Notes: generated from the sequence alone by a model not told the origin. A stretch of DNA of 64,000 nucleotides from Macrostomum hystrix (GCA_950097015.1 CATNEN010000001.1:18104001-18168000); one strand, 5' to 3'; shown: positions 36,807 through 60,554, counted from the first letter of the stretch. Program-made: numbers and translations.

Positions 36807-37727
36807 CATGCCAAGAATTTAAGCCGACCCATCTGAAATGGAAAAGAAAACTAGGAGCCTAGTTGTAAGCAAGCTCGAAAAGAATAAATTAAATAAATGA
36901 ACATCTAAATCAGGCCCTAGCTTTATAAGCTCTTTACCATACTGGCTTGAGAATCAATGACAATGGTAATTATAATGTAGCCCATACATGGATATACATG
37001 TAGTCACCCGGTGTAAAAAACATCGTCCGGCGGACGATGATTTTTTGGGTCCGCCGGACTTTGACTTTTGGTCTATTGTACGCAGAAATTTAGTCCGGCG
37101 GACGTCCGCCGTCGGCCGACGGAGGACCAATTTCGGACCATTGTAAAATGTTGTGAATACTACTATTAGTAGTGTAGCTCTGAATGAAAAATCGTATTAA
37201 TTATTCTCTCGTATTCCTTTAAATAACTTATTAAACATGAACAAAAATATTTTAATTTTCTTATTGAAAAAATGAATGTTATCGTATATTCTTATTAATT
37301 TTAATTTGCAAATACGTTACTCATTTCTTTATTTCACAGATACAATATAACAGAAAGAGACAATTAAACAAACATTTGCAAGTTATAAAAGAAGAACAAC
37401 TTGGAATAGAAGTAAGCAAGACAGAACTTGCTAAAAAATTAGGATTATTAAAAAATTACATACAAAATACAGAAAGCAAAGTATAAAATGCCTTTGCAGT
37501 AATACAACGCACAACAGGCAGCATAGACATGGGGTAAAAAATACTAATTTGAATACATAGCAAGAAATATCATTGTGTACTATACTTACTATACTCAACG
37601 TAAATAACGAAGCGCGTTTCTAAAGCATGTAGGAAAATAATAGAAAGGAAGACGAATAATTTTTATACCTCACAAAAACTACAAAATTTTGTGTATGAAT
37701 CAAGACACATAAATACGCTCGTACAAT

Positions 37728-38121
37728 AATAATAATAATTAGACACTAGACTCAAGGGCCAGTGCAGGTGTTGTGTGTCAAGCACACTAGCAGGAGGGGA
37801 CTGCACACCTAATGTAAATCCCCGGCTCTCTCGGACACCGGAATTGACAGCCTCATGTCAGCAATGTAATTAATTTTTCGATACATATCGGCAGCATCCA
37901 AACCCCACTGAATTGCCGCACAGAGCAGCATTTTTCCACGCCAGCCGGAATTATCATTACCCGACAAAATGTCCGTACTCATTTGCAGCTGAGTAGACTG
38001 TGGGCACATCAGGGCAAAGCAGCTTGCCAAAGACTGCACGAATAGTTCTAGACTAGGTCGGGAATCGAACCCAGGACCATCTGATCCAGAGTCCGACACC
38101 TTACTGACTGAGCTATCCGCC
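37728..38121 (-). mobile_element. tRNA-derived SINE, family A
   Basis: A box TAGCTCAGTCAG, B box GGTTCGATTCC and a (TAT)n tail; second copy at 57427-57838. Confidence 0.9.
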
Positions 38122-38331
38122 TTTACATAAATACAACTTAGAGTATAAATTGTGCCACATATGTCCCATTTTAGCTACTCACTAGCAAGTCGTTAGTAGT
38201 AGCATACGAATTATTAGAAGCATACGAATTATAGTTCCGAAAAATAAACGAAAGTTGGGATTTATGAGTGAGAGACACTTAATTTATAAATATTCATCTT
38301 CTGAGCTGGTGCTCAGAACTCGAGCGCGCTT

Positions 38332-41275
38332 TCAAGCCGTCGTAGCTCCAGATGCCGCAGCTCCGACCGCCGCACCTCCAGATGCCGCAGCTCCGGCCTC
38401 CGCAGCTAAGGCCGCCGAAGCTCCGGCCTCCGCAGCTAAGGCCGCCGAAGCTCCGGCCTCCGCAGATCCGACCGCCGCACGTCCAGATGCCGCATTTTCA
38501 GCCGCCGCCGCGTAGCGCTGCCCGGCACTGACTCGCCGCTCCTTTGCCACCAGCCTGTCGGAGGCGTGTTTTAGGATGTTTCTAATCTCCCTCTCTACGT
38601 CGAACTCCGATGGTCGACCTTGGGGGTAGAGCATGGTGACTGCCTCTGGAAAAGAGTGTTGAAAGTCTCAATGACGAAATGCTCTCGACATGAGTGCCTA
38701 TTTTGCCTATACCAATTTCATGTTGCCTAAATATGAATGAATATGATGAATATCTTACCAAAGAAAATACTGCTGAAATTACTGAATGCCAGCTCTTTGT
38801 CCGACAACTCCTGGAGGCCTGGTTCGGCCGCGCGCAGTCTCGCCGACATGTTGCGTCCTGACCAATTGATGACGCACTGCATGTTGGTCGCAAGGCACTT
38901 GCTCAGCATGCGCTTGCATGTGTCGTGGACTGTGCTTCCCCGACAGCTACGGAGGCATTCGGCCTGTTTGAGATTGATTTATTGTGTTTTTAATGTATTT
39001 AGTGTAGTTTATTGGTAGTATAATGTGTATCGTGGTCTAAAAATTTTTGGAATAGCTTGACTTGTAAAATGTTGTGAATACTAACTATTAGTAGTGTAGC
39101 TCTGAATAAAAAATCGTGCAAGACAAAAAAATAATACTCACCAAACGCCCTTGCTGCACTCGGGAATTCCAGAAATTTACGTACTCACTCCAACTCGAAA
39201 TCGGAGCGAAATCCGGTTGCCCAGCGTTGTTAGACCGCTGACCGAGCTGCTGCACACCGATTGGCCGCTGCAGCTGCTGCATAAATTCAGTCAGTCTAGC
39301 CGAGATAGCATCAACTGACGAATTCATGTCTCTCCGGAGAGCTTCGACAGCGGCCTGTGTCTCATAGCATCTCCTAGCAGTCAGAGTCGCCAAATAGATG
39401 GCCGTCTGCAGGGATGCAGGGTCCAGGCCGCTTCTTCGCAGCCGGTTCTGCGTTCCGGCCATAGAGGAGCCCGGTTGGCCTAGGAAGCTGCCATTGTCTG
39501 TTGACAGCGTTAAGTTAACGGACGGGTTGATATGTAAGTTTGTAACTAAGCAAGTCTTATTTGCGAATAACCAATAAATAAGATTGTGAATGGATCAGTG
39601 AGTCTCAATGATCCAATAGCGAGTCTACAAATGAGCGAATGCAGAAATATTATTTCGAAACCTTACCATCAGCTACTTCCTGATGGACCGAGCTGCTCAG
39701 CCTGCTCGGTGAACGCTGAATGTCTGATGCCGATGGCCCCGACAATTTTGGCACAGTAGTGGCATTGTCATGACCTGTAAGCAGAGTAGTGGGGAAAATA
39801 AATTAGACTTTGAATCACTGTTTGTAAATCTGCTAGTAATTGATTGAGTAAGTCTGTGAATGAATTGAACAGTGAGTCTGTGAGTGAATTGAACATTGAA
39901 TTGTGAATGAATGAACCAGTGAGTCTGTGAATCAATAAATCAATGAGTTTTCGCGAATGGATCAGTGAGTCTGCGAATTTATATGAATCCGTGAGTTTTT
40001 GAATACGTGTATGCATGGATGGATTGGATGAGTGAACCAATTTAGTGTATAGTCTAATAAACTCTTACCATCAACAATCGGAGATTCCATGGCGCTGGTT
40101 GAATGCAGGTGGTTCTCCTGGTCCTCCATCAGTCTTTGAGGTGTGGATGGGGATGGGATCAGTGTCGCGGTGCTGCTTAATCTCTGTAGCTGCGGTCGAT
40201 CAGGCAGAGGAGCTGCTTTGGAGCCCACATTCCTCTGATTTATGGCCTCGGAAGCTTCCCTCTCGCTCTCCGAGGTAGTAATGTTCTGTTTTAATTTTAG
40301 AAGGAAATGTGATGATAGGCAGTGTAATGACTTGTGTTAGAAGTCAAAACGAGCTCCAATTTCAAGTGTCTCGGCTCTCACTGGGAGCAGATCCAGAAAA
40401 GGAGGAACAGAAGAGTGTGTGGAGCCCAACCAGTCAGGCTCAACATTATATTTGAGGGCTCTGGGCCCATGACAAAGCAGGCTACAACAAGCGCAGGGGA
40501 AGGCATGTGAAAGTACAACGGGAAACTCGGTGCGCAGTGAGTTGAGAAGCGTACAGCGCCCATGAGTCAGTCAGTGGCCCCCACGCTGAGTGCAAGCAGA
40601 CAGGACACAGTTAGTTTTGTGCAGTCAAAGTTCCCGGCCAGGCGTGCAGACTGAGGGTCTGCAGCCCAGGCCATCACAGGCAGCTATTCTGCTTATTGAA
40701 AAACTCAATTTGTGTGGATAAAGTCTGTTCGTGAATGAACCAGAGTCAGTAAATGAATAAATGAGAGCGTCAGTAAATGAATCACAGAAATCAGTGAGTC
40801 TGTGAGCAAATGAATGAGTGCGGCTTTGATCTGTGAATGGTTTAAGCAGTGAGTCTACTTGGATAATTAATAAAAATGTCTGCTGTTTATTAACAGACTA
40901 TCTGTTATAGTAAAAGTTGTAGTGTCCTACCTGAATGGCTCCCAATCGGCTTCGGTGGCGCCCGGCATTCACCCGACAAACGGCCTTCAGAAGCGAGTCC
41001 ACACTTTTCTTCTTGATGGTGCGCATTCTCCGCAGGTGAAGGACGGTTGGCGTGCTGTCCACTTCTGGGTCAGTGACCACCTGGAGGAGAACGGCGTCAT
41101 ACCATTCGCCACTGTACTCTGCCCTCACCTCAATTCTCGTAGCTGAGTACAGTTCCGAAGGCTCCATGCTGGCCCAGTCAAAATCCTGGTATTCACCAAG
41201 CATAATCTCTGTCTCATCTACTTCTAAAATTTCACCATCATTAGAGAAAAATACTATATAGCGATTGGACTGCAT
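38332..41275 (-). CDS. CACTA accessory ORF2, DUF4806-type protein, 6 exons
   Basis: Approximate exons 41275-40931, 40285-40069, 39774-39667, 39497-39142, 38963-38758 and 38645-38332, GT-AG and phase-compatible. Motifs TCKRMLSKCLATNMQCVINWSG and IRNILKHASDR, with a coiled coil upstream. Confidence 0.8.
40308..40678. mobile_element. Possible solo LTR in intron 1 of ORF2
   Basis: TGTGATG...CATCACA termini and a GC-richer interior; the TSD is imperfect (GGAAA/GGCAG). Confidence 0.45.
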
Positions 41276-41342
41276 TTTAAGCTTTTATAATAGCTTCAAT
41301 ATAAGAATTTGAGTGACTAAGTAGCTAGAAATTTTCTAGAGA

Positions 41343-41615
41343 CTATAAAGTTGCTCAACAAAGATTGATCAACTATTCATATACGAGCTACGTACGTGCA
41401 GATATGCTCCGTTGGGACCCCGCCTTCTCAAAGCTTTACTGGACAAGAGCCAATGCAAAAGCGCGGAATCCGACAGAGCCAATCCGGTTAGAGCGAGCTG
41501 AGCCAATAGCGAACGGCTCGAGCGAATGACTCGACAAAGGCAAACTAGCTTTTGTAGTAATTGAATTTATTGTAATTTACTTACCTTAAGTATCTGTAAT
41601 TTACCGGGTATTTAC
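41343..41615. promoter_or_regulatory. CCAAT-rich promoter block, copy 1 (upstream of ORF2)
   Basis: Three AGCCAAT boxes; homologous to 42894-43230. Confidence 0.65.
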
Positions 41616-42478
41616 TGTAGTTTGCGTTTAATATCGTTGATCACCATCTACTAGCGTTGATGGTGATTCTTTTTTTCCGTTGCGATGCAAATATTACAAT
41701 ATGCATGATAGTCTAGCTTATCTAGCAATCGTTGCAATGATATCATTACAATCTGCCGGTCAGAACTCAGAACTCATGATTACTAGAATTGCTAGACACG
41801 CCTACTATGTATATGCTGAGCCTACAGCGGCTGACAACAGAATTAATTTCTTTCATGTGTTTTTTTCAACTAAATAGCTAAATAATTAGGAATGCATTAT
41901 CAACAATGTATGCTGTCTTGTAACCGTCTCTCATACACGATTTGTACGACTATGATTAAGAACTATGATTCCGATTCAGACTCCTGATTCAGACTGTGTA
42001 ATTGTCCTGATGTCCTTTGATTTCTCAATAAGGTTTCACATACATACTAATACTATGTATTGTATATATACAATATTATTCCTTATTGTCAAGTCAACAA
42101 CTATACGGAAATCCAACCAACCAGTGCCAGTGGCACACAAAAAATTGAAGACGGCGATGAAAAATTATGGCTTGTGTATTTTTTGTGTAAATGTGTATTT
42201 TTTAAACATTTATTTATTTAAAAATGTGCGCGTGCGTATTTGTGCATAAATATTGAACACAACATTAATACAGTTATTTATAAATTATTATTGTCAATAA
42301 GTGCAATTATCGCCACTTAAATTGGTCAGCCGGTCCCGGTCAGCCGGCCGATCTGCTGCCCTGCAGCGATTCACAGGACGCCCGGCTGCGATATAAAAGA
42401 TGGGTTTCAGTTTCATTTAGCTTATTAGCTCGGTTATCAGATCAGATGCGTTAATAAATATTCTAATAATAATAATAT

Positions 42479-42823
42479 TCAAAAGCGACTACTCACATAT
42501 GGGTCCAGGCCCGCCGCTATGCGGCGAGCTCTGGCCATCCGAATCATGGCCAGCTTCATAAGACGCGTCGCTTCATTCAGCGCGTCCTGTGCCCGGCGCC
42601 GTGCGGGCGTCCAGGCCACTGTCGCCGCCATCTCTTCCGCAGCGACGAGGCATGACTGGATGGCCTCATCCAGTTTGGTGGTGGCATTGGCCAGAAAGTT
42701 CGCCCGGAACTGTGCCGGGAACAAATGAAATTTGAACTCATTGACATCGTCATGAACATCCAGGCCATGGACATGGCATTGGCTGCTGTTGATGCTGTTG
42801 CTGTCGCTGCTGTTGCTATTCAT
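42479..42823 (-). CDS. Orphan intronless 114-aa helical protein (CACTA cargo)
   Basis: AAAAAATG start and a GC-rich open frame in AT-rich flanks; lies at the same distance from promoter copy 2 as ORF2 does from copy 1. Confidence 0.6.
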   Translation of the reverse strand: MNSNSSDSNSINSSQCHVHGLDVHDDVNEFKFHLFPAQFRANFLANATTKLDEAIQSCLVAAEEMAATVAWTPARRRAQDALNEATRLMKLAMIRMARARRIAAGLDPYVSSRF

Positions 42824-42893
42824 TTTTTTGTTGAAGGAAGGTTGAAGGAAGTTAGTTGAGGCAATTTTAGTGATCTGGTGGGAGAAGTTGCAA

Positions 42894-43230
42894 CTATAAA
42901 ATTGCTCAACAACGATTGATCATCTATTTATAAATGAGCCATACGTGCAGATATGCCACAGGTGGGTCCCCGCCTTCTCAAAGCTTTATTGGACACAAGC
43001 CAATGAAAACTTGCCCGCGCCGCGCGGAATCCGACAGAGCCAATCCGAGCCAAGAGCGAGCCGAGCCGAGCCGGCTCGAGCCGAGCGAGCCGAGCCGAGC
43101 CGAGCTGAGAGCCAACTCGACTCGAGTCTCGACAAAGGCAAGTAAACTAGCAATTTTAGTAAACTAATGAATTGTAATTTACAGACCTCTAGCCTCTAGT
43201 AATATTATTTTCCCGGGTTAATTTACAGCA
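42894..43230. promoter_or_regulatory. Bidirectional CCAAT-rich promoter block, copy 2
   Basis: Lies between divergent ATGs at 42823 and 43289 and contains TTTATAAA, ATTGG/CCAAT boxes and (GAGCC)n. Confidence 0.65.
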
Positions 43231-43288
43231 ATTTTATTTTCAATATATCCCATCTATTAGCCTTTCATAACCATCACTTACTCACAAA

Positions 43289-46039
43289 ATGTCTAAAAGA
43301 CGGACTAAAGGCGACACGAACCCACGACGAAACTTTCAAATTTGGTTCACAAAGAACCTACTTGACTTTGCGGACAGTGATGTAGTAATGGACCAAGTGA
43401 GTTTTCAATTCTTATTGAGATTCTATTTAAGTTTCATGCAATTTTGTAAAGAAATTTGACGAGGGTGGGGCAGACAGAGGCAGGATTGACAGGGTGATAG
43501 GTTTGATTGATTGCCTCGAATTTTATGCACAGTTTCATCGTCTTCTTTTTTTCCTCTTTATTTTCAATCAGGAGGTTGCATCTTCCCATGCAGATGGCGC
43601 AAGCCTCATTCCACCTGAGGATTCGCGGCCTGATTCTACCAGTGCCGGTGTCAATGCCTGTGACCCCATACATTTATCAGCTATTAACGAGGCTTTCGAC
43701 GAAAGTGAGGCTGATGAGTTCGACTACGCCGATCACTTGTCAACAGATGCGGAAGATGGGGACCCAGGCCAAACAGCAAAGCCATCATTGGAGAGCCTGA
43801 ATGAGGAGCTTCTAATATTCTTCGTTCGTTACAACATCTCACATCGAGCGATGCAGTTCCTGCTCAATGCTCTAGTCTGCCGAGGCCTGCCGGTCGCAAG
43901 AACAGTGCACCGTCTGCGCAAAGAACCTTCGGCTGAAGCAGTACAAATACAAAAGTACACCATGGGTAGTGGACACTTTTCCTACATCGGTATTGCTTCG
44001 AACCTGGCGTTCCTGATTCGCGGCGGCATGTTGGATCTTGGAAATCCGGAAGCCACCCAGAATGACAGAGCAAGGTTGGAACTGGACATTGATGTTGGCA
44101 TTGACGGAATGCCGATTTACAATTCGTCAAACTACGCGGCATGGCCTATTATCGTTAAGTTTTCGAGATTCTGTCGCCCACTTCCTGTTGCTGTGTATGC
44201 TGGGTAAACCACCTCTTACCGAGTACCTGGCCGACTTCATCAAGGAGCTGCAGTCCTTCATGACCGACTTTGTCGAAGTTGATGGGGTGCTAATCCACAT
44301 AAGGAACATCACGTTCATTTGCGACACGCCAGCGCGGTCCTTCATTACCGCAACTTTGGGCCACAACGCACATCACGGCTGCCCCTACTGCAGAGTGGTA
44401 GCCCAGACGGTCGACCGGCGAATAGTCTACCCTGTCGAAGTCGGAGAGTGTCGCACAGCTGAGGATTACCGTTTTAATAGGTGCGTGTGTGTGCATGGGG
44501 TTGTGTGTATGTGTGTGTGCTTTTGCGAATTTTGTATACCAGCTTATACATCTGTATATGCCTACATGGCAGGATATCTGACATGTTTTTTACATGTCTA
44601 CGAACCTGACCTGACGTTGTCTTAATACGTGAATCAGTTAATCATATAAATATGCAAATGGCTGTATCGGGATATGGCAACTAAAGAAATGTGATTCCGA
44701 TTCAGACTGTCTATATAATGGCTGTCCTTTTAAATCTCAAAAATTATTCACATACTTGCTATATACAATATAAAATATACAATATTCAATATACAATAAT
44801 ATGCAATAGCTCGATTCCCGACTCCACTGAAAAAATTTGTGTCCTTTAGCAAGACACTTAACTCTGCAGTGCTTCGGTTCACCCAGCTGTTAAATAGGTA
44901 CCAGCATTAGCTGGGGTAATTGAAGGTGGGTGTATGGCGTCCTCCCAGTCCATGGACTGAACAGTCGTACGCAGCCTTCAGATGCGCCGCGCATTAGCTG
45001 CGGCTGTGCTGTCGATTGGGGCAGGTGTAATCAATTATTATTATTACTAGTCTTTATCGCCAACAACTACTGCAGGGAATCCAACCAGCGGCATGAACCA
45101 AGTCCGCTCCTGTCACTGCCAGGCTTGCAACTACCTGATGCTTGCCCACCGGAGCCAATGCACCTGCTCTTTCTAGGCGTCGCTAGGCGTCTTTTCACAT
45201 TCCTCTTTGCGGTGGATGACGGACGGCGGCGCAAAATTAGGCCGGATCAAGTTTCCGCACTTTCTGATTTTGCCGAATCACGTGCTATATATACACCGAC
45301 AAATTTCCAAAGACGCCCTCGGAGAATCGACCGAGAACTCGGACATTTCAAAGCCAGCGAGTTCCGCACGTGGACTTTGTATGTGGGCCCGTATTTTTTT
45401 CGCAAATTTCTGCCAACAGAGTTGTACAGGCATTTTCTTCTATTTCACTTCGCCTGTTATGTTCTTTGCTCTGATAGCCCACAGCCTGAACTTCTTGATG
45501 CCGCTGAATCTGCCTTGAAACTTTTTGTGTATGACGCAGCTCAACTGTACGGCAACAGTTTCATGACTCACAATGCTCACGTTCTTTTGCACTTGTTTCA
45601 ATACGCGAGGAAACGTGGAAATGTGTCTAACTTTTCGGCCTTTCCATATGAGAACTACCTCTCTCACTTAAAGGGTCGCCTTCGAGTAACGCGCTTTGCA
45701 TCATCTTACTTGCTAAATCAAATGCTTTCACTTCGCGACTTACTAGTCAGCAACCCAATTCAGCCCAATAAGTACTCTGTTAAGATGCCCGACAACTGTT
45801 GCATCGTGAATGGCTCAGTTGTTCGGATTACTTCTGTTCTTGGTGACCAAGTAACTGGCAATATTCTGTCGCTGCAAAAGGACTTGTATGACTATCCATA
45901 TCCGTCCTCAAAACTGGGTATCGGAGTCTATTGTAAAACACGATCTTTTGTTACTGGCACTCCCCACAGGAAGTGCTTTCTGTTCCCGCGCAAGACCGGA
46001 AAGGCATGGCTGGTGATTCCTCTCTCTGGTGTTGATTAG
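43289..46039 (+). pseudogene. CACTA/EnSpm transposase, 3 exons, single frameshift at ~44203
   Basis: Exons 43289-43396, 43572-44480 and 45076-46039. Motifs GIDGMPIY, ICDTPARSF, GHNAHHGCPYC, EPMHLLFLGV, FKASEFR, HNAHVLLHL and SAFPYENYL. Confidence 0.92.
44807..45046 (+). mobile_element. SINE family B body in transposase intron 2
   Basis: GTGTCCTTTAGCAAGACACTTAA...CACCCAGCTG...GCCTTCAGATGCGCCGCGC...(TTA)n. Related copies at 51006-51203, 56622-56818, 57100-57412 (minus), 13116-13295 and 57839-58012. Confidence 0.85.
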
Positions 46040-46690: not shown

Positions 46691-46857
46691 AGACTTCTAG
46701 AAATAACAACTTCTAGAAACTTCTAGAAATAAAAAGTCTGTGTGTTCCCCTCCCCACCCCACTTGATCGGTCCCACCCAAACCCGTTCAGAGTCATTACA
46801 CACTACACAGGAAATTATTTTGCGATTTATTGTCATCACAAAAGTATTTAATATTTC

Positions 46858-48312
46858 ATGGATATGAGTGATCAGTGGCTAATATCTGACTGCGGAAGTG
46901 CAGACACAGCAGCGCCCGGTTTAAAAATTCGTTTAAAGCGCGTATCGACCGCCCTCAATGAGGTGAGAATTCAGAGGCAGCAAATTATTTGAGATTGTAA
47001 AAAGTTTACAACTTTTCCTTTATTCTTTTGTTATATTTCTATTGTACACTGACGTATTGCACGCATACATTGCCAGAATTCCCAACGCGCTGATCAGGTC
47101 AGGGTGACCTGCGAAACTGGCCCGGGACTTATAGTCCGATTCAAGCGACATTCTTGCGCAATTCCATCAACGGCTGAACTTCAGGTGAATGATAATGTAT
47201 GTTACCTGCCTGTTCAATAACTTGTCCTTCTAAGTATTCTCCTTCTCCCCTCTGCAACTATAATCTCCCACTATAATCTTTGCATGTAGGCCCGCGTCTT
47301 AATTTCTGTTATGCACATTCTCATGTTTCTGCATGAGAAAATATTAAAAATGTTTAATTTTTCAGACTAACAAACGCGCTGTCCCTGAGGTCAACGTCGA
47401 ATTATCCTTCTCCGACAGCGAGGAAGAGGGCGAAGGCAACTCACGCGTGGATCAATCTTTACGAATCGCCCTAGCAGTATGTCCATTAGAGGTTCGTCAA
47501 TCAATTGAGTGCGATTAGATGGTGTGGCTGTATAAAGCTGATTTTGGGGCAAAGTTTCCTTTTCTGTAATAGTTTTTCTTTGAGTAACTTAATGAGAGAG
47601 GAGAGAATTAAGAGGGAGTAAAAAGTAGAGGCCGATTAAGTGAGATGAGATGCAAACGAGATGTCAGCAAGCAAGTGAAATGTGAGAGAGGCGATGGAGA
47701 AAAGGGCGATTTAGAAGCATGAAAAAAAAAACAAATTGAATCGTGTTTAACTACACCCCCGCACAGCCTTTGCCTGACCCGACCGTTAAGAAGAGGCCGG
47801 CTCAGAGGCTCAGCCGATCTAGTGTCGATTATCGTCCCCCGACATCCACTAGAGATACAACCGAGCGCATACTGGGCATCAACGGGAAGACAGACACCGC
47901 GATCGCTGTTGCACCTGCGGGCGAGAAGGGACTGGGCGCCTTTGCGAGAATCAACCTAGCTGCGGGGGCGTTTGTCGATCAATTCGCCGGAATCCTGCTG
48001 AACGAACAGGAAGCGATTAGACGCGAATGTGAACCTAACTCCGACTGGATGCTATTTGAGTTTAAAGTTAACGGCAAATTATGGGTAATTGACGCCAGCA
48101 ACAGTGATGGATTGGGAAGGTACCTGAACCATTCTTCTACTGCTCCTAACTGTAAAGCAAAGCTCATTATTATCGACCAGGGGCTGCGACCCGTCATTTA
48201 TTTCGTGACAAATAAATATGTTGCAACGGGCACAGAACTGACGTTCGACTATACGACTGGTAGAGGTATCGATAATGATGATCTTGTGAAGAACCCATGG
48301 CTTCGAGACTAG
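46858..48312 (+). CDS. PR-Set7/SETD8 (KMT5A)-like SET-domain lysine methyltransferase, 4 exons (CACTA cargo)
   Basis: Exons 46858-46962, 47077-47184, 47366-47476 and 47767-48312, all phase 0 with no stops. Motifs KGLGAFA, IDAS, LGRYLNHS, PNC, GTELTFDY and the terminal NPWL typical of SETD8. Confidence 0.88.
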
Positions 48313-49252: not shown

Positions 49253-51002
49253 TTTGATGATGATCCCCCAGTTGATGATGATCCCCCAGTTGATGATGAT
49301 CCCCCAGTTGATGATGATACCCCAGTTGATGATGATCCCCCAGTTGATGATGATCCCCCAGTTGATGATGATCCCCCAGTTGACAATGATCCCACATTTG
49401 ACAATGATCCCCCAGTCGACAATTATCCCCCAGTTGACCATGATCCGCCAGTTGACAATGATCACCCACTTGATAATGATCACTCAGTTTATTATGATCT
49501 CTGAGTTGATTATGATCAGCCAGTTGACAAGTATCCCCCAGTTGATGATGATCCCCCAGTTGACAATGATCCCACAGTTGACAATGATCCACAAGTTGAC
49601 AATGATCATTCAGTTGATTATGATCACTCAGTTGACAATGATCACCCAGTTGACAATGATCCCCCATTTGATGATGATCCCCCAGTTGATGATGATCCCC
49701 CAGTTGACCATGATCCCCAAGTTGACAAAGATTCCCAGTTGACAATGATCCACAAGTTGAAAATGATCACTCAGTTGATTATGATCACTCAGTTGACAAT
49801 TATCCCCCAGTTGACAATGATCCCACAGTTGACAATGATCCCCCAGTTGACAATGATCCCCCATTTGATTATGATCCCCCAGTTGATGATGATCCCCCAG
49901 TTGATGATGATTCCCCAGTTGACAATTATCACCCAGTTGACAATGATCCCCCAGTTGACAATGATTCCCAGTTGACAATGATCACTCAGTTGATTATGAT
50001 CACTCAGTTGATGATGATCCCCCAGTTGATGATGATTCCCCAGTTGACAATTATCACCCAGTTGACAATGATCTTCCAGTTGACAATGATCCCACAGTTG
50101 ACAATGACAATGACAATGATTCCCAGTTGACAATGATCCACAAGTTGACAAAGATTCCCAGTTGACAATGATCCACAAGTTAACAATGATCACTCAGTTG
50201 ATTATGATCACCCAGTTGACAATGATCCCCCATTTGATGATGATCCCCCAGTTGATGATGATCCCCCAGTTGATGATGATCCCCCAGTTGACCATGATCC
50301 CCAAGTTGACAAAGATTCCCAGTTGACAATGATCCACAAGTTAAAAAATGATCCCCCAGTTGACAATGATTCCCAGTTGACAATGATCACTCAGTTGATT
50401 ATGATCACTCAGTTGATGATGATCCCCTAGTTGATGATGATTCCCCAGTTGACAATTATCCCCCAGTCGACAATTATCCCCCAGTTGACCATGATCCGCC
50501 AGTTGACAATGATCACCCACTTGATAATGATCCCCCAGTTGACCATGATCCCCAAGTTGACAAAGATTCCCAGTTGACAATGATCACTCAGTTGATTATG
50601 ATCTCTGAGTTGATTATGATCAGCCAGTTGACAAGTATCCCCCAGTTGATGATGATCCCCCAGTTGACAATGATCCTACAGTTGACAATGATCCACAAGT
50701 TGACAATGATCAGTCAGTTGATTTTGATCACTCAGTTGACAATGATCACCCAGTTGACAATTATCCCCCAGTCGAAAATGATCCCCCAGTTGACCATGAT
50801 CCCCAAGTTGACAATGATTCCCAGTTGACAATGATCCACAAGTTGACAATGATCACTCAGTTGATTATGATCACCCAGTTGACAATGATCCCCCATTTGA
50901 CAATGATCCCACAGTTGACAATGTACCTCCCCTGTTGACAATGATCCCCCAGTTAACAAAGATCCCCTAGTTGATCATGATCCCCCAGTTAACAATGATC
51001 CC
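49253..51002. repeat. 18-bp minisatellite (CAGTTGACAATGATCCCC)n, 1.75 kb
   Basis: Same unit as 2908-3170, with higher-order blocks visible. Confidence 0.97.
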
Positions 51003-52765
51003 TGAATTGCTTCAGTTCAACCAGCTGTTAAATGGGTACCAGCATCAGCTGGGATACTTGAAAGGTGGGTGTGGCGTCCCGCCAGTCCATGGAATGAACA
51101 GCTGTACGCAACCTTCAGATGCGCCGCGCCATAGCTGCAGCTGTGCTGTCGGCTGCACATCTGGCCCAATTGGGGCAGGTGTAATCAATTATTATTATTA
51201 TTATGGTGGTATGTGATTCTATGGTAATGTGTTTACATAATGGCGGAGTGATTTGGAGAGTCGTCGATTTACGCTCGTAAAGCAGGTCGCTCAATTGTGA
51301 GGGCGACCGGCATTATGAATTTTAGCGCTGATTCATTTCTTAAATTCTAACAGCAACTGCGCACTTAGTGCGGCCTCTGATGCGCAAGTTGACAAGATTT
51401 TTTGGCTCAGTTGTGCCAGCTCAGTATTATTAACTTATTAAGTATTGTAGACATAGATGAGCCGCCTTCAGGAAAACGATCCCAAAAGATTCGATCGTAG
51501 GTGAAAGCACTAGCTGTGTCAGCATTATGTTTTGCTGCATAACGTTTAAATTTCGAAATTAAAGAAGTAAGAGTCAACGAAAATAAATATAAATTTCTAA
51601 CGCAGTTCAGTATAAAGAATTTGTCTGACTGTGGCTGCTTAATTGCCGCACAAAGAACGTTTAATTTTCTGTATAAATAGTAAAAGGATGCATAGCGGGA
51701 GAAAAAAAGTAAACACCAAGTATCTGTATACATATGGGATAGGCCTGGGATAGGATTTGGATTGCACTCAAACCGGAATGTTTTGTAGAATTAAATATCT
51801 TCAGGGTACTAAATGCAAAGCAACTGAAGAAGAGTGAAATTGAACAGACCAACAGTAAATTACAGAAATAAAAATGGGAAAGCAAAAAGAGCAATAATAA
51901 AAGAGCCCGCCTTTACCTGATAAAGGCACTTTGAGTTTTTCTTTCGTACAAAATGCCTGTTGTGACTATTAATTAGTAAAAACTTATTTTCGAATTTATT
52001 TCTCACGCCGAACAGTTATATTGCAGTGATTATGCCGCTAAACTAAACAGTACGGCAACAGTTTAATGACGCTCGAACTTCTGAGGAGCAGTCTTAGAAT
52101 AGACACTAATATCAATGTCATCCGCAGCTTCCATTTCTCGACGCACCTGACCGTGTACCGGGCGTCAGGTGTTCATGGAGAATATCTGGAAGAAATTCGG
52201 AATGTTTTAAATCCAATTTACATACGAGTATTTATCTGTCTAGAATGATTGCCCTTAATCAAAATTATAAACGTATATTACCAAATTTGTAAAGGGATCA
52301 GTGTCATTGACAATACAACAACAAAACAGCAACAACAACTGTCTTTGACAATGGCAATTAGAAATATATTTACTGATTATTGTCTACAACCGTAATGGTA
52401 GACAATACAATAGCCTGGGGAATTTCATGGTCTAACCCAACTAAATTTTGAGAGATCCAGAGGGGAAGTAAAATACACAGCAGAGATAAGAGTCTAGAAT
52501 CACTAGAGTCTAGACTAGACAAACAAAGCGTTTCTTTAGGGCAAGGACTTCTATAAATAGCATCTATAAATAGATCGATGCTTGTATTCAGAGGTCCTTG
52601 CTTTAGGGTAGCATAGATACCTTACATTGTAACTTGATTTGGCTAGCTGTCTAAAGCGGAGACACGGCCACAATATTTTTTCCAACAACTATAAGCAACA
52701 AAGCGGAAGCGGCCAAGAGTAATATTAACTGGTTCCTCTTAGAGGCTGTGCCAGACACTGGGACA

Positions 52766-53764
52766 ATGAATTTTGATAGCCGAAATACAACTGAATCCCT
52801 AAAGGTAAATCTATATGATTCGAGACAGTGACTGGTTGTTCTATGGGAGACAGTGGGTATCTACTAGGAGTATATCAAAATCTCGTAGATTTTCTAGGTA
52901 GCTAGCTTATAGCTAGAAAGACAGTTACTATAGCAACGCTTGATTGCGGAGAGTGGCTAGATTGTCTAGCTATGGGACACGGTGTCTAGATTGATTGTTC
53001 ACGGGAGACAAGCTAATCGCAAACCCATTTATTCTTACCAGCCCGTCGATGACCTGGGCAGTCTAGACAATTTGGACTTCGCCGTGATGCGCTGCGAATT
53101 CAGTGACCTCCAGTCTTACGAAAGCGCTGCCCTCTTCGATTTGTACAAGCCGGTTGCCAACGAAGATGACACTGGGGCCATGAGCGCATCGGAGTCCATC
53201 TGGTCCATCGGACAGCAACAGCATCCGCAGCAGCGACTGAATGCTTCGGCGATTGATTGCTCCCTTTGCTGGGTTCATTCGCTTGATCCGCCCACTTCGC
53301 ATCTCCCAACGCATGTGCAGCCGCCAGGCGTCATAAAAAGAACAAGGAAGAAGCGTGCTGGCATCGGTTAGTGTTTTTGAGCTGCGAAAATTTGGGATTT
53401 GAGAATCTTTAGTATTTAACAACAATTAGCTATCAAAACTTAGCATTGCCCAACCTCAGACAGGAATTTTTGGCTGTGGGAGTTTCTGTACCAGTTACTC
53501 GAAACTCCGCCTGTCGCTGACCTGTCGCCACCCTGCTTGCGCTGGGAGAACAAGCTGGAGGGCATTTTCCAAATTCTAAACCCAACCGGCCTAGCAGAGG
53601 CGTGGGGCAGTTACAAGCGGCGGGACATGAGCTTTGAAACGATGAAGCGAGCGCTGAGGCATTACTATGAGGACAAGCTTATCACCAAGACCCACCCAAG
53701 AGACAAGCACTTTTACAAATTTCACTTCGACCACGAGAAATTAAAACTTTTTTTAGAAAAATGA
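52766..53764 (+). CDS. ETS-domain transcription factor (ELF/E74-like signature), 3 exons (CACTA cargo)
   Basis: Exons 52766-52804, 53042-53366 and 53460-53764, phase-compatible with no stops. WLWEFLYQLL...LRWENKLEGIFQI...LAEAWG..K..MSFETMKRALRHYY...YKF. Confidence 0.9.
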
Positions 53765-54116
53765 CTGAGACAAAATGACACCCAAATCAGAAATCCCATA
53801 ATTTAATTAATACCTCAGAAATCCCTACATTGCCCTAGAAATCACATGATCCAGACAATGACTCAGAATTACATCACGGATTGTCTGATTGTCAGTTGCG
53901 CTACTTCACTCATGTAAACTATTGTTTCTTACGGCCATGTTTTGTTCTGTTTTCTTGTGTTTTCTCATATTGTCCATGCATGACTTATCATCTGTAATTA
54001 AGCCTTGATTTTGAAGACATGTAATTGAGACCGACTGTTTCCTATAAAAGTATGATATCTACGAGTACTTATAAATGCTATACTATAAATAAACTAATAG
54101 TTGCTGCACATTATTT

Positions 54117-55658
54117 TATAAACTACGGGCTCGTAAAAAACAAAAAGCACACTTAACGTTGTATCGAGTGCAGCCGTGGAACTCTATTGACATGACAAGG
54201 AGTTCGTGAATGTCGCTGTCGTTCTCTAACCTGCTAAACTCGGCCAGATGCAGCTAGCCGGGACGCTGGGCAAACTTGTGCTCGACGCTGACTGAAATTC
54301 CCCATGCTGCAGAGGGTTAGATAAATTCATTTATCTCATTTTGAATTCCTAATGTGAATTTAAACTCAAACTGCTTAAGAAGAAAGTAACTGCATACCTG
54401 TACATCCGAGGTAAAAGCTAAGAGCGATGTCTCGTCGGTACATTTTCTGCCGACCACCTTGCAACATACGTCTCAGGATTTTCTGGAACGGGGAAAAACT
54501 AAAATTGGAATTTGACAGTATACAGTTTTTGCTTTTGATTTGATCCCTAGTCAAGTATGAATTTCAGCTACATTTCAGCAAGCCTTTAAGGGACAGATGC
54601 GATAGCCAGCTATTATATCAAGTCATTCTAAGAAGCTAATTGCATGCATGCATATTAAGTGCATCTTAAACACAAAGCAAGGTGCAATAGCTCAATAAAT
54701 ATGTTTGTTGTCGTGCAAAGCTAAAGCAATTTATAAATACTTAATGCATGCAGTGCATGTAATAAATAAACAAGTGTGAAATAAATAAAGACACGAAGGC
54801 ATAGATATCCGAAAATCCTATGGCGCTGCATATCCTATATGAGCCGCGCAATCTTTACTATAGTTATGGCGCTGCATGCATCGTATGTATCGTATTCGTA
54901 TCGTATACGTATACGTATCGTATCGTATATATCGTAGAGCATCGTGGCGCTGCATAAATATTTGTGCTCTGAAAGGCGAAAAGGAGTTTTAAGGCGCAAA
55001 TATCATTATTTAGTAAAAACATGCACCTTTAATAAATGCTTTATCCAATGGCAACAAGGGCATGCATCCAACTCTAAGCAAATGCTTGGGGTTGGCTTAT
55101 GGAATGAGCTGCATGGTTGCACACGAAGTGCGACAAAAAGACTAACGTTATAGCATTTAGTTACTGTCATATTAAAGGTGAGTGCATTTTGCTTTATTGT
55201 AATATTGTGTTAGCATTTGTTGTGTGAATTGCAGCATGTTAAACGACGTGTAGCTAATGGCTAGAAAGAGATTTAGTTTTACCACCTAGCACCAATATGA
55301 AGCTTTTAAAGGAAAGTAAAACCTGCAAAACCGGGTATATCTTTTTCAGGATGTTTAAAAGCATATTTAAAGAATTGTTATAAAAACTGTCAAGAATTGC
55401 GAAGAACCATTAGTATAAAATAGCAAAAAGTACGTGGTTTAACAAACCTTATTATTTTTTTCCACCGGAAGGTAGGTGCCGGGGCGGGGTAAAGTTGGTA
55501 GATGCCCCGGCACCTACCTTCACCTTCCACGTGCCGCCCTGGCCCACCGTGTGTGGCTCTATAAGCCACGGTGAGCCAGGGCCCTGCTGCTGCGCCTGCT
55601 GCGGGGCCTGCTGCGCCTGTGCCTGCTGCTGCTGGTGCTGCTGCTGCTTAATATCCAT
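54117..55658 (-). pseudogene. Possible 3-exon orphan gene with N-terminal polyQ and one in-frame stop
   Basis: Approximate exons 55658-55518, 54482-54398 and 54307-54117 join in phase (…WKVK|KILRRMLQGGRQKMYRRDIALSFYLGCT|AWGISVSVEHKFAQRPG*LHLAEFSRL…). Confidence 0.35.
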
Positions 55659-55661
55659 TTA

Positions 55662-55798
55662 TATCTCTGATTCCGTAGATGATCTCTAATTCTGTAGATT
55701 ATCTCTGATTCTGTAGATTATGTCTGATTGTGTAGATTATCTCTGATTCTGTAGATGATCTCTAATTCTGTAGATTATCTCTGATTCTGTAGATTATG
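55662..55798. repeat. 19-bp tandem repeat (TCTCTGATTCTGTAGATTA)
   Basis: About 7 units. Confidence 0.9.
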
Positions 55799-57099
55799 TT
55801 GGGACTATATATCCACTTGATATCCTTAATATCCACTTGAAACTAGAAATTAGATACCTGAAATTAAGTGGTTTTTATCAAATTCGTATCTTTTTAATTC
55901 AGATCGTATGAACAGATCTTTGTATGATTATCGATTTTTAAGAGCACTCAGCACTGAAATCTCAGGAATCAATTGAGAAGCAATCAAAAGAATCTCGAAG
56001 GAATTAAACAAATAAAAGAAATTCAAAGACAGACGAAACAAGACTAGGTTTCGGCAAGAGTGTTCTATTAAATAAATTCAGCTGACTGGTGAGTTACTAG
56101 TTTTAATTGTAGCTCGAACATTATTTATCAGACTAATTTAAATAATAAGTTTATAAGTTTATAAGTAATAAGTTTTTCAGCTATTAAAATATTCAACATT
56201 ATTGAACAGGTACTTATCACACTAGCTGGAATGGTGGCATTTTTGACTGGCTTAAGGCAGTACTACCTATAGCAACTGCTTTCCTTACATCAGTGCATCT
56301 GAGAACTGCTGGTCACATAGTAAGGGCTTGACTAATCATGATCCTTTTGTGAAATACTTAACACCTAACCCACAATTGATAGCTACTATCAATTGTAACT
56401 CAAATTAATTTTGAGCCATTGGTTTAAATAATACATGTGTACAGGTTCAGTTTGTCTAAAAAGGTACTATGCATGTATTTTTTAACTTAAAAGCTTACTA
56501 AACATATATACTACCTCTGTATGTCAGACCCTAAAGTGTCATAAAAATTATAGCATTCACTAGCTATTGCTAGCTGTTGGTACTAGCTAGGGTTATTTGG
56601 TCTGCTGTATTCATGTGAGACAATTTGTGTCCTTTAGCAAGACACTTAATTTACTCTGCATTGCTTTAGTTCACCCAGCTGTTAAATGGTACCAGCATTC
56701 GCTGGGATAATTGAAGGTGGGTGTGGTGTCCCCCCAGTCCATGGACTGTACAGCTGTACGCAGTCTTCAGATGAGCCGCGCAATAGCTCCGCTGTGCTGT
56801 CGGCTGCAAATCTAGCCAGTGACCCCAGTGTATACTTGAGTTATTTGGTCTGGTATTTAGCAGCTAGGGGTCGGCAATGAGCCAGTGGGCCACTTACAGA
56901 ACCTAAAAGACGACGGCTGTATTAAATGTAGGAATCTGAGAAAGGGCAGGGATTAGACATAGGATAGATGAGGCAGGGGGGAATTAGGGTGGGGGTTTGA
57001 TTCCTAACTCTACTGGTACAACTTATGCCCTTTGGCAAGAGGCCTAACTTGCTTGCTTCAGTTCACCCTGTTATAAAATTAATAATAATCCATTAACTA

Positions 57100-57412
57100 A
57101 TTACAACTGTCACTATGGGCCAGATGTGTAGCCGACAGCACAGCTGCAACTATTGTGCGGCGCATCTGAAGACTGTGTACGGCTATGGACTACAGCCAGT
57201 ACAGTCCATCGACTGGGGATGGCTACACCCACTATAAGTTACCACAGCTAATACTGGTACCCATATAATAGCTAGCTGAACTGAAGCAATTCAGAGTTAA
57301 TTGCCTATCTTAGAGACACAAATTTCAAATTGTTTCTTAAAGAAACAGGAGTCAGGAATCGAACCATCAACCTTCAAGATGCGAGTCTGACGCTCTAACT
57401 GCTGGGCTACAA
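57100..57412 (-). mobile_element. Full-length tRNA-headed SINE, family B
   Basis: GTAGCCCAGCAGTTAGAGCG...GGTTCGATTCC head followed by the family B body. Confidence 0.75.
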
Positions 57413-57426
57413 CCCAGCTGTAAAAT

Positions 57427-57838
57427 AATAATAATAATGACACTAGACACAAGGGCCAGTGCAGGTGTTGTGTGTCAAGCACACTAGCAGGTGGGGACTG
57501 CACACCTAATGTACTCCCCGGCCCTCTCGGACACCGGTTGACAGCCGCGTGTCAGCAATGGAATTTATTTTTTCCAAACATATCGGCAGCATCCAAACCC
57601 ACTGAATTGCCGCACAGAACTGCTTAATTTCACGCCAGCCGGAATTATTATTCCCCGACGAAATATCGGTACTCATTTGCAGCTGAGTAGACTGTGTGCA
57701 CATCAGGGCAAAGCAGCTTGCCAAAGGCTGCACGAATAGTTCTAGACTAGGTCGGGAGTTGAACCCAGGACCATCTATCTGATCCAGAGTCCGACACCTT
57801 TACAGACCGAGCTATCCGCCCCTCTGTTTATCCAAGCT
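57427..57838 (-). mobile_element. tRNA-derived SINE, family A, with an 11-bp TSD
   Basis: AGCTGTAAAAT at 57416-57426 and 57839-57849; the empty site is visible in the paralogous copy at ~13119-13129. Confidence 0.92.
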
Positions 57839-59544
57839 AGCTGTAAAATGGGTACCAATATTAGCTATTTGAACTTAAGGTGGGTCTGGCATCCCTCAGT
57901 CCATGGACTGAACAGCCATGTGCAGCCTTTAGATTCGAGCGTACGCTGCACAATAGCTGTGGCTGTGCTCTTGACCATACTGCACAATTGGCCGGATAGG
58001 TATAATAAATTATATTAATTACTTAGCCTATATATAATATATGTGCTATGTTATTTATTTTTCTGCTCTGTTTAATACATTTAAAACCAACAAGCTAACC
58101 AATAACTCTCTTAACCACCTTATCCTTTTCAAACAGGTTAAGGAATGGCAAGATTCTCAATCTGCATGTACGAGAGCTTACTGGAACTTCTACTGTATCT
58201 GGTGCTTGGCCAACAAGAGCTAGCCTGAATGCTGCTGCCATCCAAGATTATAAAAGGCATGATTGACTATAGCTCACTGTTAACTGACAGATCTTTGCTT
58301 CTTAATGCCTAAGCATGACGAAAACTGCATGCCACATACCTAAACCAGCTAATAAGTAATAAAACATTTTTCATGACAATTAGTTCTCATATCATATAGC
58401 TATATAACAGTTTCTTTCTTTCACTGTTTCAATAAAATAGCCACTTGTGAAAGCCCAAGAATAAACAGAAGTTAGACTTGAAGTATCTAGAGCAGAAAAT
58501 AGGAATTGTAACCTAGCTATATAGTATATAGGCATTTAAGCCTCACTTGGTACAATTCATTATAATATGTTGCAAAAATATGTATTTTTTGCTAAATAAA
58601 AGTAAATATACACTATGCGCTTTAAAATAACTCTCTTTTTGTAAAAAATATTCCTGTAGCTTCATAATATATCCTAACTAAGCTACACTGACATTGCTGA
58701 TCAAATAGACTTTCACTTAATAAATAACTTATATAGATAATCCACAAAGTAGATGGCGAGTTTGATATCGGTGTTTATATTCACTTTGTCTTGTCTAATG
58801 AATTTCAGTGTCTTACTGTGAACAGTTTTTGAGAATTCGTTGATCGAATCGAGAATTCTCACGTACATAATAGCTAATTAATTGAGGATCCGGTCAGGTC
58901 AAAGTGAAAGTTTGCAGTGCATGCGCTTTCAAAAACTTTGCTCAGGCCATTATTTCGTTTTTAAGCTGCAGTTTGAAACTAAAAAATTGATTCTGACTTC
59001 TTATTAAGTTTAGTGCAACTGGCTTCTTCTGAGACAAAACTTTTTATTGCCTGCGGTCAAAATACATGTGTTTGTTAAATTTTACATTCACGTCGCCTTT
59101 TTACGGACTCAAATCGGACGGAAAACGGACCATCACAATTATGCGATTTCTACCTATTCTATATACTCCTAAATACATAGCTATTCGAGATGTAATGCAA
59201 TTAAAGCAGTTGCCGCAGTATCAATCATTTTATACGGCTATTGAGCGGTTTACTGCAGACGGCCGGAATATGCATGGCCGACCAGAAGATCGAATTGTAT
59301 ACACGCTCAGAATATTTTGATGATTCCACTATATACTCGTAAATTGTTTCACTGATGCACACAAATTTTATTTCCTAGCTCTCACTGATCAGTAAAACAG
59401 TAAGTATATGTATAGTAAATAATTTATATCTAAAAACTAAATATTACGATTATACAAACCAAACATTTAACTTGCTGCACTACTAACGTTTAAATACGAG
59501 TAGTATTTCAAGCATGTTAGGTTCTGTACAGTAGATCAAAAAAC

Positions 59545-60050
59545 GACATTTTTGCGGACTGGAATCGGACTGTTGGAATTACACAATTTTTCATCTTTTA
59601 AATGCATAAGTAACGGAAAATAAAGCCTTTTATGACGTTTTTAGCAGCTAACTCAAGAATTTTTTTATGGAACATCGTCCTCCTCGTCGCCCTATTGAGG
59701 ACTCAAAACGGACCGCGGACGCGTCGGCCTTTTGCGGAATAATTTCGGACTGTACGAATTACACATTTTTTCATCTTTTAAATGCATTTAGAACTGAAAT
59801 CAAGGCCTTTTAAGACGTTTTTAGCAGCTAACTCACGAGTAATTTTTTTTGGAACATCGTCCTTCTCGTCGGCCTTTTTCGGACTCAAATCGGACCATTT
59901 TGGAGCCGGTCGACGCGTCGGCCATTTTCGGACTATAATCGGACTGTACGAAGTACACATTTTTTCATCTTCTAAATGCATTTATAACTGAAATAAAGAC
60001 CTCTTAAGACGTTTTCAGCAGCTAACTCGATTATTTTTTAGCTGAGCTGA
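59545..60050. repeat. CACTA right subterminal ~180-190-bp tandem repeats
   Basis: Three related units (CGGACTGT..TTTTCATCTTT..GACGTTTT.AGCAGCTAACTC..GGAACATCGTCC). Confidence 0.85.
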
Positions 60051-60554
60051 CGAAGGCCAAAATGGGACCGTAGGGGTCCGAAAGACGTCCGACGGACGAT
60101 GACTTTTACACCGGGCAGGAGCGAGATAGGTCAATGCTTATTATAGGCCTAGACAAAGTTGTTGTAAATAGGATTATTTTTGCTTGTAGTAGATAATAAT
60201 AAAAATAATCAGATTCAAATGCTAACTCATTTTTGGTTATTTTACTTTCTAGCACTTAGCTTAGCTATTTTTATGAATTTGGTAATTATTTTCTACTATA
60301 TAAAACAGTCTTGTAGGCAAAGCAGTGTACTAGCTTATACCCTATTTTTATGAATATGAGCATTAACAAGGCCAACATTAGCTAGCCTATCTAGTTCAGT
60401 ATATAGATATATTTAAGTCACTATGTTGTAGTTTTTTATTTTCTAGTTATTAGCTTATTAGTTACTTATTACTAGCTAAGCTGAGCTAACTACTATATTA
60501 CCTAATAACTACTTACTTTGCTGCTAATACCAGTCATGCTTTACTATAGCTAAG

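Follow-up and report, generated by a model that had tools for sequence, protein, structure and literature searches.

Can a 23-kb segment of an animal genome that holds a transposase gene, a SET-domain gene and an ETS-domain gene between inverted ends be one mobile element, and, if it is, do the SET and ETS genes work for it? The question is raised by a 64,000-nucleotide (nt) stretch of Macrostomum hystrix (GCA_950097015.1, CATNEN010000001.1:18104001-18168000; hereafter the window, with positions counted from its first nucleotide), in which an initial annotation had proposed a giant animal CACTA transposon carrying its own histone methyltransferase and transcription factor. We report that window positions 37007-60115 are one copy of a young, recently mobile DNA transposon that moves by cut and paste and is present in several copies; this copy entered another repeat as one piece of 23.1 kb. 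We hold the structural and genetic part of this account with high confidence, and consider it probable on the whole that the locus is a mobile CACTA-type transposon with SET and ETS as accessory genes. On the separate claim that the two genes serve the element and are not passive passengers we are divided, leaning slightly to the sceptical side.

The unit is 23,109 bp long and is bounded, as annotated, by matching inverted ends and a 2-bp duplication. Its left 30-nt terminal inverted repeat (37007-37036, plus strand), which starts with CCCGGTG, is complementary at 27/30 positions to the right one (60086-60115, minus strand), and the element tips read CCCGGTG...CACCGGG. With 37 inverted pairs in the surrounding 25 kb, a terminal inverted repeat is by itself not above chance; we consider this one real because inverted-pair search and copy comparison find it at the exact ends of six copies, with nt 1-29 of the left repeat identical in all six and copy D deviating at position 30. 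Directly outside lie the two halves of the target-site duplication, CA at 37005-37006 and CA at 60116-60117, assigned by flank comparison and by empty sites that have a single common CA.

The terminal 370-390 bp recur in the genome, the left end at ~10 places and the right end at more than 25, and looking for other copies bounded by the inverted repeats yielded five end-to-end ones besides that in the window (copy A, flanks CA and CA). These are copy B (contig C1:18578273-18601720; 23,448 bp; flanks AA and AA), copy C (C1:15899937-15924290; 24,354 bp; AT and AT), copy D (C1:16187066-16235174; 48,109 bp; TA and TA), copy E (C5:5083918-5122844; 38,927 bp; GT and GT) and copy J (C1:18238561-18252561; 14,001 bp), whose flanks, TG and TT, are unmatched. 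Copies B (23.4 kb) and C (24.4 kb) are collinear with copy A. All six lose homology precisely at the inverted ends and lie in unrelated flanks, and 5/6 have matching 2-bp duplications (CA, AA, AT, TA, GT).

An empty site reading TAGTCA|GGAGCG had been predicted from the ends of the element, and it is present twice in the genome. At the first site, the left and right 300-bp flanks of copy A map to C1:18182248-18182547 and C1:18181950-18182249, both at 100% identity; at the second they map to C2:8112974-8113272 and C2:8112655-8112975. At both of these paralogous sites the flanks overlap by exactly 2 bp, leaving one CA and no 23.1-kb element. The locus might instead have been a segmentally duplicated host region, or two insertions bracketing host SET and ETS genes, a reading that would suit the clustering of copies on C1, mostly at 14-19 Mb, and the lack of a matching duplication in copy J. 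It fails to explain why homology stops exactly at the inverted ends within unrelated flanks, or why the five matching duplications differ from one another, and no internal ends occur around SET or ETS (the sole internal match, a 12-mer at 46915 that might have been a second left end, has one mismatch and no extension and was rejected as chance). Both versions are excluded because the empty sites hold a single CA without the element, and we give them practically no credence. What had been annotated as one cargo-bearing transposon, and not as separate nested insertions, is thus one unit.

The flanks of copy A (36707-37006 and 60116-60415) are a 100% match to an inverted copy ~18 kb rightward (C1:18181950-18182547, about 77950-78547 in window numbering). 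Because the flanks are themselves repeat and an inverted copy lies nearby, copy A is nested in an arm of another mobile element's long inverted repeat. That host element has further copies on C2, and between the arms of its inverted repeat, at C1:18176784-18177743, stands a 37%-identical relative of the transposase of the 23.1-kb element, so that this neighbor may itself be CMC-related. On the right side of copy D (C1:16174019-16187431), three right ends lie ~6.5 kb apart (16187066, 16180540, 16174019) and 3' fragments of the ETS exon are found just past the first two (16186520, 16179994), an arrangement that looks like a right-terminal tandem triplication.

The transposase gene lies on the plus strand at ~43668-46036. 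Exon 1 (43668-44480), located by tblastn with homologues and a five-copy alignment, encodes the first D, the second D and the C(2)C of the catalytic signature; exon 2 (45076-46039), located by homologue mapping and a sub-threshold DUF4218 match, encodes H(3)H and the catalytic E. Separating the two is a GT..AG intron (44481-45075), placed by exon mapping and its donor site, which contains at ~44833-45014 a repeat resembling a short interspersed nuclear element or miniature inverted-repeat transposable element (SINE/MITE-like). The annotation had implied an intact gene, and this did not hold for copy A, in which exon 1 is broken by a frame-shifting 5-bp deletion at 44200 and the likely start ATG reads ATA (43670). 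Both lesions are absent from copies B, C, D and E, where the two exons are without stop or frameshift, as is exon 2 in three additional copies for which it alone was covered; exon 2 is open in copy A, and the genome-wide total of copies with an open exon 2 is eight. Copy A cannot make its own transposase and is non-autonomous. Its siblings look open wherever their sequence was inspected, and we regard it as a recently disabled family member, and we infer that sibling copies could mobilize it in trans.

To which transposons does it belong? Homologues of the transposase are 30-54% identical, the best (54%) coming from Macrostomum lignano. An eleven-sequence alignment has conserved IDG, CDxPAR, GCxYC, HxLLH and FEN, corresponding to D, D, C(2)C, H(3)H and E, all of which are in copy B; the D-D-C(2)C-H(3)H-E signature is that of EnSpm, Mirage, Chapaev and Transib, the CMCT clade (PMC12730594). 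Copy B also matches, residue for residue, motif I of Transposase_21 as written in PMC1636069. Sub-threshold Pfam matches among the transposase exons and four homologues are to DUF4218 (E 3e-4; in the element at 44924-46036) and DUF1258, and the ESM-atlas clusters nearest to the transposase carry PF02992 and PF06869. A full-length homologue that is 38% identical (P0004) has an AlphaFold model with a predicted local distance difference test (pLDDT) score of 78, and its fold matches RAG1, BbRAGL of amphioxus and HzTransib of Helicoverpa with E 4e-8 to 4e-6 and template-modeling (TM) scores of 0.39-0.50 over ~560 columns, values that belong to the homologue's model and not to the element's own protein.

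Target-site duplications are 2 bp in animal TRC elements, 2-5 bp across CMCT and 3 bp in plant CACTA elements, while the terminal core is CACTA in plants, 5'-CA..TG-3' in most CMCT lineages and CCC in animal TRCs (PMC1636069, PMC12730594); the tips of our element are neither CACTA nor CA..TG and agree with the CCC core proposed for animal TRCs (PMC1636069). Next to the tips are subterminal CGGAC/GTCCG motifs, delimited by motif counts on the left (37007-37140, with GTCCGSCGGAC palindromes) and by repeat and motif counts on the right, where they lie in three tandem units of ~180 bp (59538-60085). There are 8 hits to the motif within the leftmost 150 bp and 12 within the rightmost 600 bp, compared with an average of 0.25 for a 150-bp segment of the element; part of the right-tip motif is lost in copies B, C and J. 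Because of the signature residues, motif I, the ESM clusters, the P0004 fold, the CCC end, the 2-bp duplication and the subterminal repeats, we file the element as animal CACTA/EnSpm-related, in the CMC clade and with a RAG1/Transib-like DDE transposase, while it has no literal CACTA end and leaves the Transposase_21 threshold unreached. The CCC ends, 2-bp duplication and CMC-clade transposase bear out the animal CACTA type first proposed.

The closest known system in mechanism and ends is the animal TRC elements, SmTRC1 of Schistosoma mansoni with relatives in Tribolium and Aedes (DeMarco et al., 2006; PMC1636069). Both have CCC inverted ends, a 2-bp duplication and a Transposase_21-type transposase with motif I (PMC1636069), and they share spliced transcripts, an internal tandem-repeat block and a flatworm-like host, the best transposase homologues of our element being from Macrostomum. 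Unlike the TRC elements, which measure 4.5-9 kb and for which only transposase-related products are described, the family reported here is 23-24 kb long with SET8-like and ETS genes, and its protein falls short of the Pfam Transposase_21 cut-off.

In gene order, the two-exon transposase is followed ~1.7 kb downstream by a four-exon SET gene and then by a small ETS gene. Searches with SET, ETS, transposase and left-arm sequences were made exon by exon, the exons being joined only to check frame. For SET, the annotated intact four-exon SETD8-like gene stands: a SET8/KMT5A-like methyltransferase gene of 294 amino acids (aa) occupies 46858-48312 on the plus strand, with exons at 46858-46962, 47077-47184, 47366-47491 and 47767-48309 plus the stop, every junction GT-AG and every exon in phase 0. 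The SET domain lies at 47740-48309 (Pfam E 9.8e-13), and all four exons are 98-100% identical across six sibling copies. Splice junctions of the model are seen for introns 2 and 3, as contigs from X1, a public run of unrecorded type, join 47184|47366 and 47491|47767 at GT..AG. When the genome was queried with a sequence beginning 27 nt inside intron 3, the full-length matches all started at the query's first bases, so that the assembly holds no intronless SET copy, and the joints in X1 therefore most likely derive from RNA.

Which methyltransferase does the element encode? A single-sequence search of solved structures gives a tie between KMT2D (2.9e-12) and SETD8 (9.4e-11). When its nearest relatives in the library, which may themselves be KMT5A orthologues, are combined with it in a profile, KMT5A (7e-68) is favored over MLL, the next family (4.5e-29), and the top fold matches of the SET model are SET8 (TM 0.70/0.79); the best named library match is annotated 'set-1'. 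The protein has the catalytic motifs RYLNHS (NHS) and ELTFDY (ELxFDY), and a Phe at the position of SET8 Tyr334; mutants of this tyrosine are the subject of PDB 3f9w-3f9y, whose titles refer to multiple methylation. The protein ends in ...NPWLRD, with a PWL motif, right after the domain, as KMT5A does, with no Cys-rich post-SET; W178 is near-invariant in the alignment of SET relatives, and SETD8 aligns to the final residue. Profile and fold searches together support KMT5A/SET8 as its closest relative.

Other SET matches in the genome are at most 44% identical, and we therefore conclude that the element did not take SET from a host gene recently. An exhaustive HMMER search of 1.84 billion cluster representatives returned no SET relative above 43% identity, and a word-based protein search for SET relatives returned one weak match only. 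The top library relatives are gene models with multiple SET stretches, P0011 from the sea cucumber Holothuria leucospilota (8 stretches) and P0012 from the seadragon Phyllopteryx taeniolatus (5); each may be an array of SET genes carried by transposons and merged into a single model. The M. hystrix genome also contains a second dispersed, multi-copy SET family (loci L046-L049, at C1:3466462, C7:10984254, C25:9646083 and C26:1257810, and others) with identical 184-aa open frames that are 31-34% identical to the element SET and aligned to its C-terminus; this may be another transposon-borne SET.

Has the SET gene been maintained? A sister lineage with 81% protein identity is open in 5/6 copies. 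Between its SET-domain exon and ours, the nonsynonymous rate (dN) is 0.095-0.115 and the synonymous rate (dS) 0.42-0.55, giving a dN/dS of 0.18-0.25; inside the 81% lineage dN/dS is 0.18-0.37 (8/10 pairs with measurable dS). The SET domain has been under purifying selection while travelling inside transposons. The main rival to an accessory role is that SET and ETS were captured once and have merely been carried since, their low dN/dS reflecting a benefit to the host or constraint from before capture. We judge this unlikely: the selection extends over dS ~0.5 in two multi-copy lineages that both adjoin transposases, no host gene above 44% (SET) or 42% (ETS) identity offers a recent source, and the genes are complete and keep their introns, with SET at least being spliced, unlike the fragments found in Pack-type elements. 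Passive carriage would nonetheless fit the deletion derivatives, since copy J lacks SET and copy E lacks ETS while both retain the two ends, and copy E has duplicated its target site.

The ETS gene (53087-53764, plus strand, 194 aa) had been annotated as intact with three exons. It is open, and coding exons could be confirmed at 53087-53366 and, with the stop added, at 53460-53761, the two joining in frame across a GT..AG intron; the third exon found no confirmation, and the 5' end of the model is a candidate. The Ets domain at 53444-53761 scores well above the Pfam cut-off (2.3e-20; 73.1 bits vs 26.9), and the upstream exon has no PNT or other Pfam domain. The protein has a basic KRTRKKR stretch and a recognition helix, KRALRHYY, that retains both arginines and aligns to SRALRHYY of ETV6. 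Among solved structures ETV6 is the best relative (8e-16), followed by ELF1, FLI1 and ELF3 (~5e-13), and because ETV6 outscores ELF1 the ELF label given to the gene is unsupported. Host ETS genes are at most 42% identical to that of the element.

Constraint on ETS is less clear than on SET. Most copies keep the domain exon open, some that are only 67-73% identical among them, and copy D has a stop. In near-identical copies, changes have gathered in the ETS exons as fast as outside them, as expected if the gene is passively carried. The weak constraint that ETS appears to be under between families counts in the same direction.

Do the two genes belong to the family or only to copy A? Close relatives of the transposase (at least 96% identical) have SET 1.55-2.0 kb downstream in 10/11 cases and ETS as well in 7/11. 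At six further loci, transposases that are only 38-40% identical are followed by the 81% SET, by ETS or by both: the 81% SET lies 2.3-3.5 kb downstream at C1:14185508, C1:17825592 and C1:19409538, a linkage that for this lineage rests on match coordinates, and ETS lies 0.4-8 kb downstream of five such transposases. SET and ETS thus recur beside transposases in sibling copies and in diverged families and are not single-copy host loci. At C1:17811666-17826533 (minus strand), a transposase with 39% identity and the 81% SET share one locus with an ETS domain that is 100% identical to that of our family and a right end that is 97% identical. Because this locus looks like a recombinant element, the SET-ETS module seems to move between transposon families, as TET/JBP genes do in fungi (PMC12730594). 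Recurrence beside 38-40% transposases and in at least one recombinant element is a further difficulty for passive carriage.

Carriers of SET or ETS are found nearly all on C1 (27.6 Mb of the 220-Mb assembly), clustered at 3.6-4.0, 14-19.4 and 22.5 Mb; off C1 there are one copy on C5 and fragments on C14, and related transposases that lack the two genes occur on many different contigs. Such clustering could result from local hopping or from a special chromosome.

Several observations weigh against our reading of the locus. On other contigs, neither SET nor ETS accompanies most of the related transposase families, so the two genes are not needed for transposition in the clade, a distribution that also favors passive cargo. 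Between diverged families the amino-acid identity of ETS (67-73%) is lower than its nucleotide identity (~81%), which suggests weak constraint or rapid change. Exon 2 of SET is undetectable in the 81%-identical sister lineage. The splice evidence comes from low-depth contigs of X1, which is the sole public run containing element sequence, no RNA run being on record; splicing of SET intron 1 is not seen in these contigs, and one spliced contig begins 60 nt upstream of exon 2, within intron 1 (47017-47076), reflecting intron retention or an alternative 5' end. Pfam Transposase_21 (PF02992) stays below threshold on the transposase exons and on four homologues. Finally, the canonical ETS cores GGAA and GGAT are both missing from the terminal 150 bp, where the subterminal motif is CGGAC.

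If SET and ETS do serve the transposon, how might they act? The ETS protein is a putative sequence-specific DNA binder that would drive transcription of the element or bring partners to its DNA. The SET enzyme would place a methyl mark on lysine, with K20 of histone H4 the most likely residue if SET8 is a guide, and so may alter chromatin state, either on copies of the element or at donor and target sites. Put together, an animal CACTA clade would run its own two-part chromatin module: ETS would recognize element DNA, at the subterminal CGGAC repeats, the 18-bp tandem array described below or an internal promoter, and would drive transcription or recruit the SET8-like enzyme; the enzyme would then mark chromatin, through H4K20 methylation or methylation of another lysine, and so escape silencing or bias landing; and the module would be exchanged between transposase families that are 38-40% identical. 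We offer this full scheme tentatively, and think that it will rather not hold in all its parts; if true, it could also explain the near-confinement of carriers to C1.

A different division of labor would make ETS the end-binding subunit of the element, sitting on the CGGAC repeats and assembling the transpososome as an analogue of TnpA or of the Myb-like protein of Harbinger, with SET secondary. CGGAC/GTCCG is enriched ~30-fold over the first 150 bp on the left and common across the last 600 bp on the right, the recognition-helix arginines are kept, and rapid change of ETS between families is expected if it co-evolves with the element ends; we also take the CGGAC motif to resemble the CCGGA part of the ETS consensus. 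ETS domains, however, need GGA(A/T), and the repeats read GGAC; the right-tip motif is partly lost in copies B, C and J; and copy E has a target-site duplication but no ETS, though ETS could have been supplied in trans. Because the tips of the element have no canonical ETS core, end-binding is a minority hypothesis, one we find distinctly doubtful, and a role of both genes in transcription and chromatin remains the form of accessory function that we prefer.

How does this combination compare with what other transposons carry? In concept the nearest systems are giant Plavaka elements, the SET-bearing HarbingerS and Phytophthora MuDR families, and fungal transposons with TET/JBP genes. Giant Plavaka elements of the EnSpm superfamily in the red alga Bostrychia moritziana have accessory genes PAG1-3 (bioRxiv 10.1101/2025.02.11.637652). 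Like ours, these elements (17-19 kb) are large, belong to the same superfamily and carry several accessory genes conserved across families, among them a SET-domain gene (PAG2) and another proposed to bind DNA. PAG2, however, combines a DNA methylase with SET, whereas the animal element has a stand-alone SET8-like protein, and the DNA-binding partner there is fused to a 2-oxoglutarate (2OG) oxygenase, in place of the ETS domain found here; this comparison is by description only. A SET histone methyltransferase has been noted in HarbingerS and Phytophthora MuDR elements (Kojima and Jurka, Repbase Reports 2014, in the summary given by PMC12730594), and accessory SET genes have been reported in Helitrons too (PMC12730594; bioRxiv 10.1101/2025.02.11.637652). 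HarbingerS and Phytophthora MuDR resemble our element in having an extra SET lysine methyltransferase gene, which has been interpreted as a counter to chromatin silencing (PMC12730594); they differ in belonging to other transposase superfamilies (PIF/Harbinger, Mutator) and, as far as the summary goes, in having no ETS partner.

Fungal DNA transposons, including EnSpm and Plavaka, encode TET/JBP dioxygenases (Iyer et al., 2014; Kojima, 2025, PMC12730594). There too, a cut-and-paste element holds a gene for an epigenetic enzyme that shifts between transposon lineages, and our finding of a SET-ETS module 81-100% identical beside 38-40% transposases is a parallel to the transfer of these genes. 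The fungal enzymes act on DNA methylation and not on histone lysine, and their carriers live in fungi and not in an animal.

Maize En/Spm encodes the TnpD transposase and TnpA, a binder of subterminal repeats, from one alternatively spliced transcript, and has CACTA ends and a 3-bp duplication. It shares with our element a transposase, a separately encoded DNA-binding protein (putative here) and short subterminal repeats near both ends; TnpA is unrelated to ETS, and our element has no CACTA ends and a 2-bp, not a 3-bp, duplication. Pack-CACTA and Pack-MULE elements are non-autonomous and carry host gene fragments. Like them, our element has host-derived coding sequence between transposon ends; unlike them, its family encodes a transposase, and its cargo is complete, intron-bearing, conserved between lineages and without a close host parent. 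The element is not of the Pack type.

The cargo combination had been put forward as undescribed. This needs narrowing, as transposon-borne SET genes have already been described in HarbingerS, Phytophthora MuDR, Helitrons and Plavaka. What is new, within the literature searched, is the ETS cargo and the SET-ETS pairing in an animal, neither of which we found there, nor did we find a paper pairing an ETS domain with EnSpm. Transposons with their own chromatin- or DNA-modifying enzymes are rare and reveal the ways in which mobile DNA resists or directs silencing by its host; most known carriers of such enzymes belong to fungi, oomycetes, plants and a red alga, and the present one is from an animal. 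To our knowledge, the ETS domain is found only in animals. The system is directly testable because natural copies with and without each gene coexist in one genome. For annotators, our findings mean that an additional 'SET' or 'ETS' gene in a genome of this kind may belong to a transposon and not be a host regulator.

In the left arm of the element, minus-strand open frames at 38335-42919 comprise what the initial annotation had called a DUF4806 ORF2 (open reading frame 2) and two orphan genes. Pfam, protein search, stops in copy B and dN/dS all leave their coding status unsupported. No left-arm frame matches a Pfam family at E<=10 when searched exon by exon, a procedure that a domain split across exons would escape, and DUF4806 is accordingly not recovered; dN/dS is mostly 0.5-2.4 and ESM-atlas recognition is low. 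The frame at 39091-39594, the sole one searched by the word-based protein method, gave no homologue there and has 4 stops in copy B. The two orphans likewise have no Pfam family, stops in copy B and low atlas recognition, and a 'Tudor-like' reading of 40901-41284 was rejected, with no Pfam match and a low atlas recognition score.

Between SET and ETS lies a tandem array of ~97 copies of an 18-bp unit (49260-51002), ATGATCCCCCAGTTGACA, whose length differs between copies of the element and which is inverted and relocated in copy E; the array is open in several frames because its unit has no stops. The SINE/MITE-like repeat in the transposase intron (44833-45014) is one of five in the element, the others lying at 50993-51168, 56622-56817, 57116-57325 and 57835-57913; it is ~190 bp long, has more than 1,400 candidate genomic matches and reaches a word depth in the thousands in run X1. 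No Rfam family was detected within window positions 36000-61000. The surroundings of the element are dense in transposons: a Tc1/mariner-type DDE_3 transposase frame lies at 22229-23143 on the minus strand (Pfam 3.7e-19), and an RNase H/zf-RVT frame of the non-LTR (non-long-terminal-repeat) type lies at 30365-31405 on the plus strand (4e-9).

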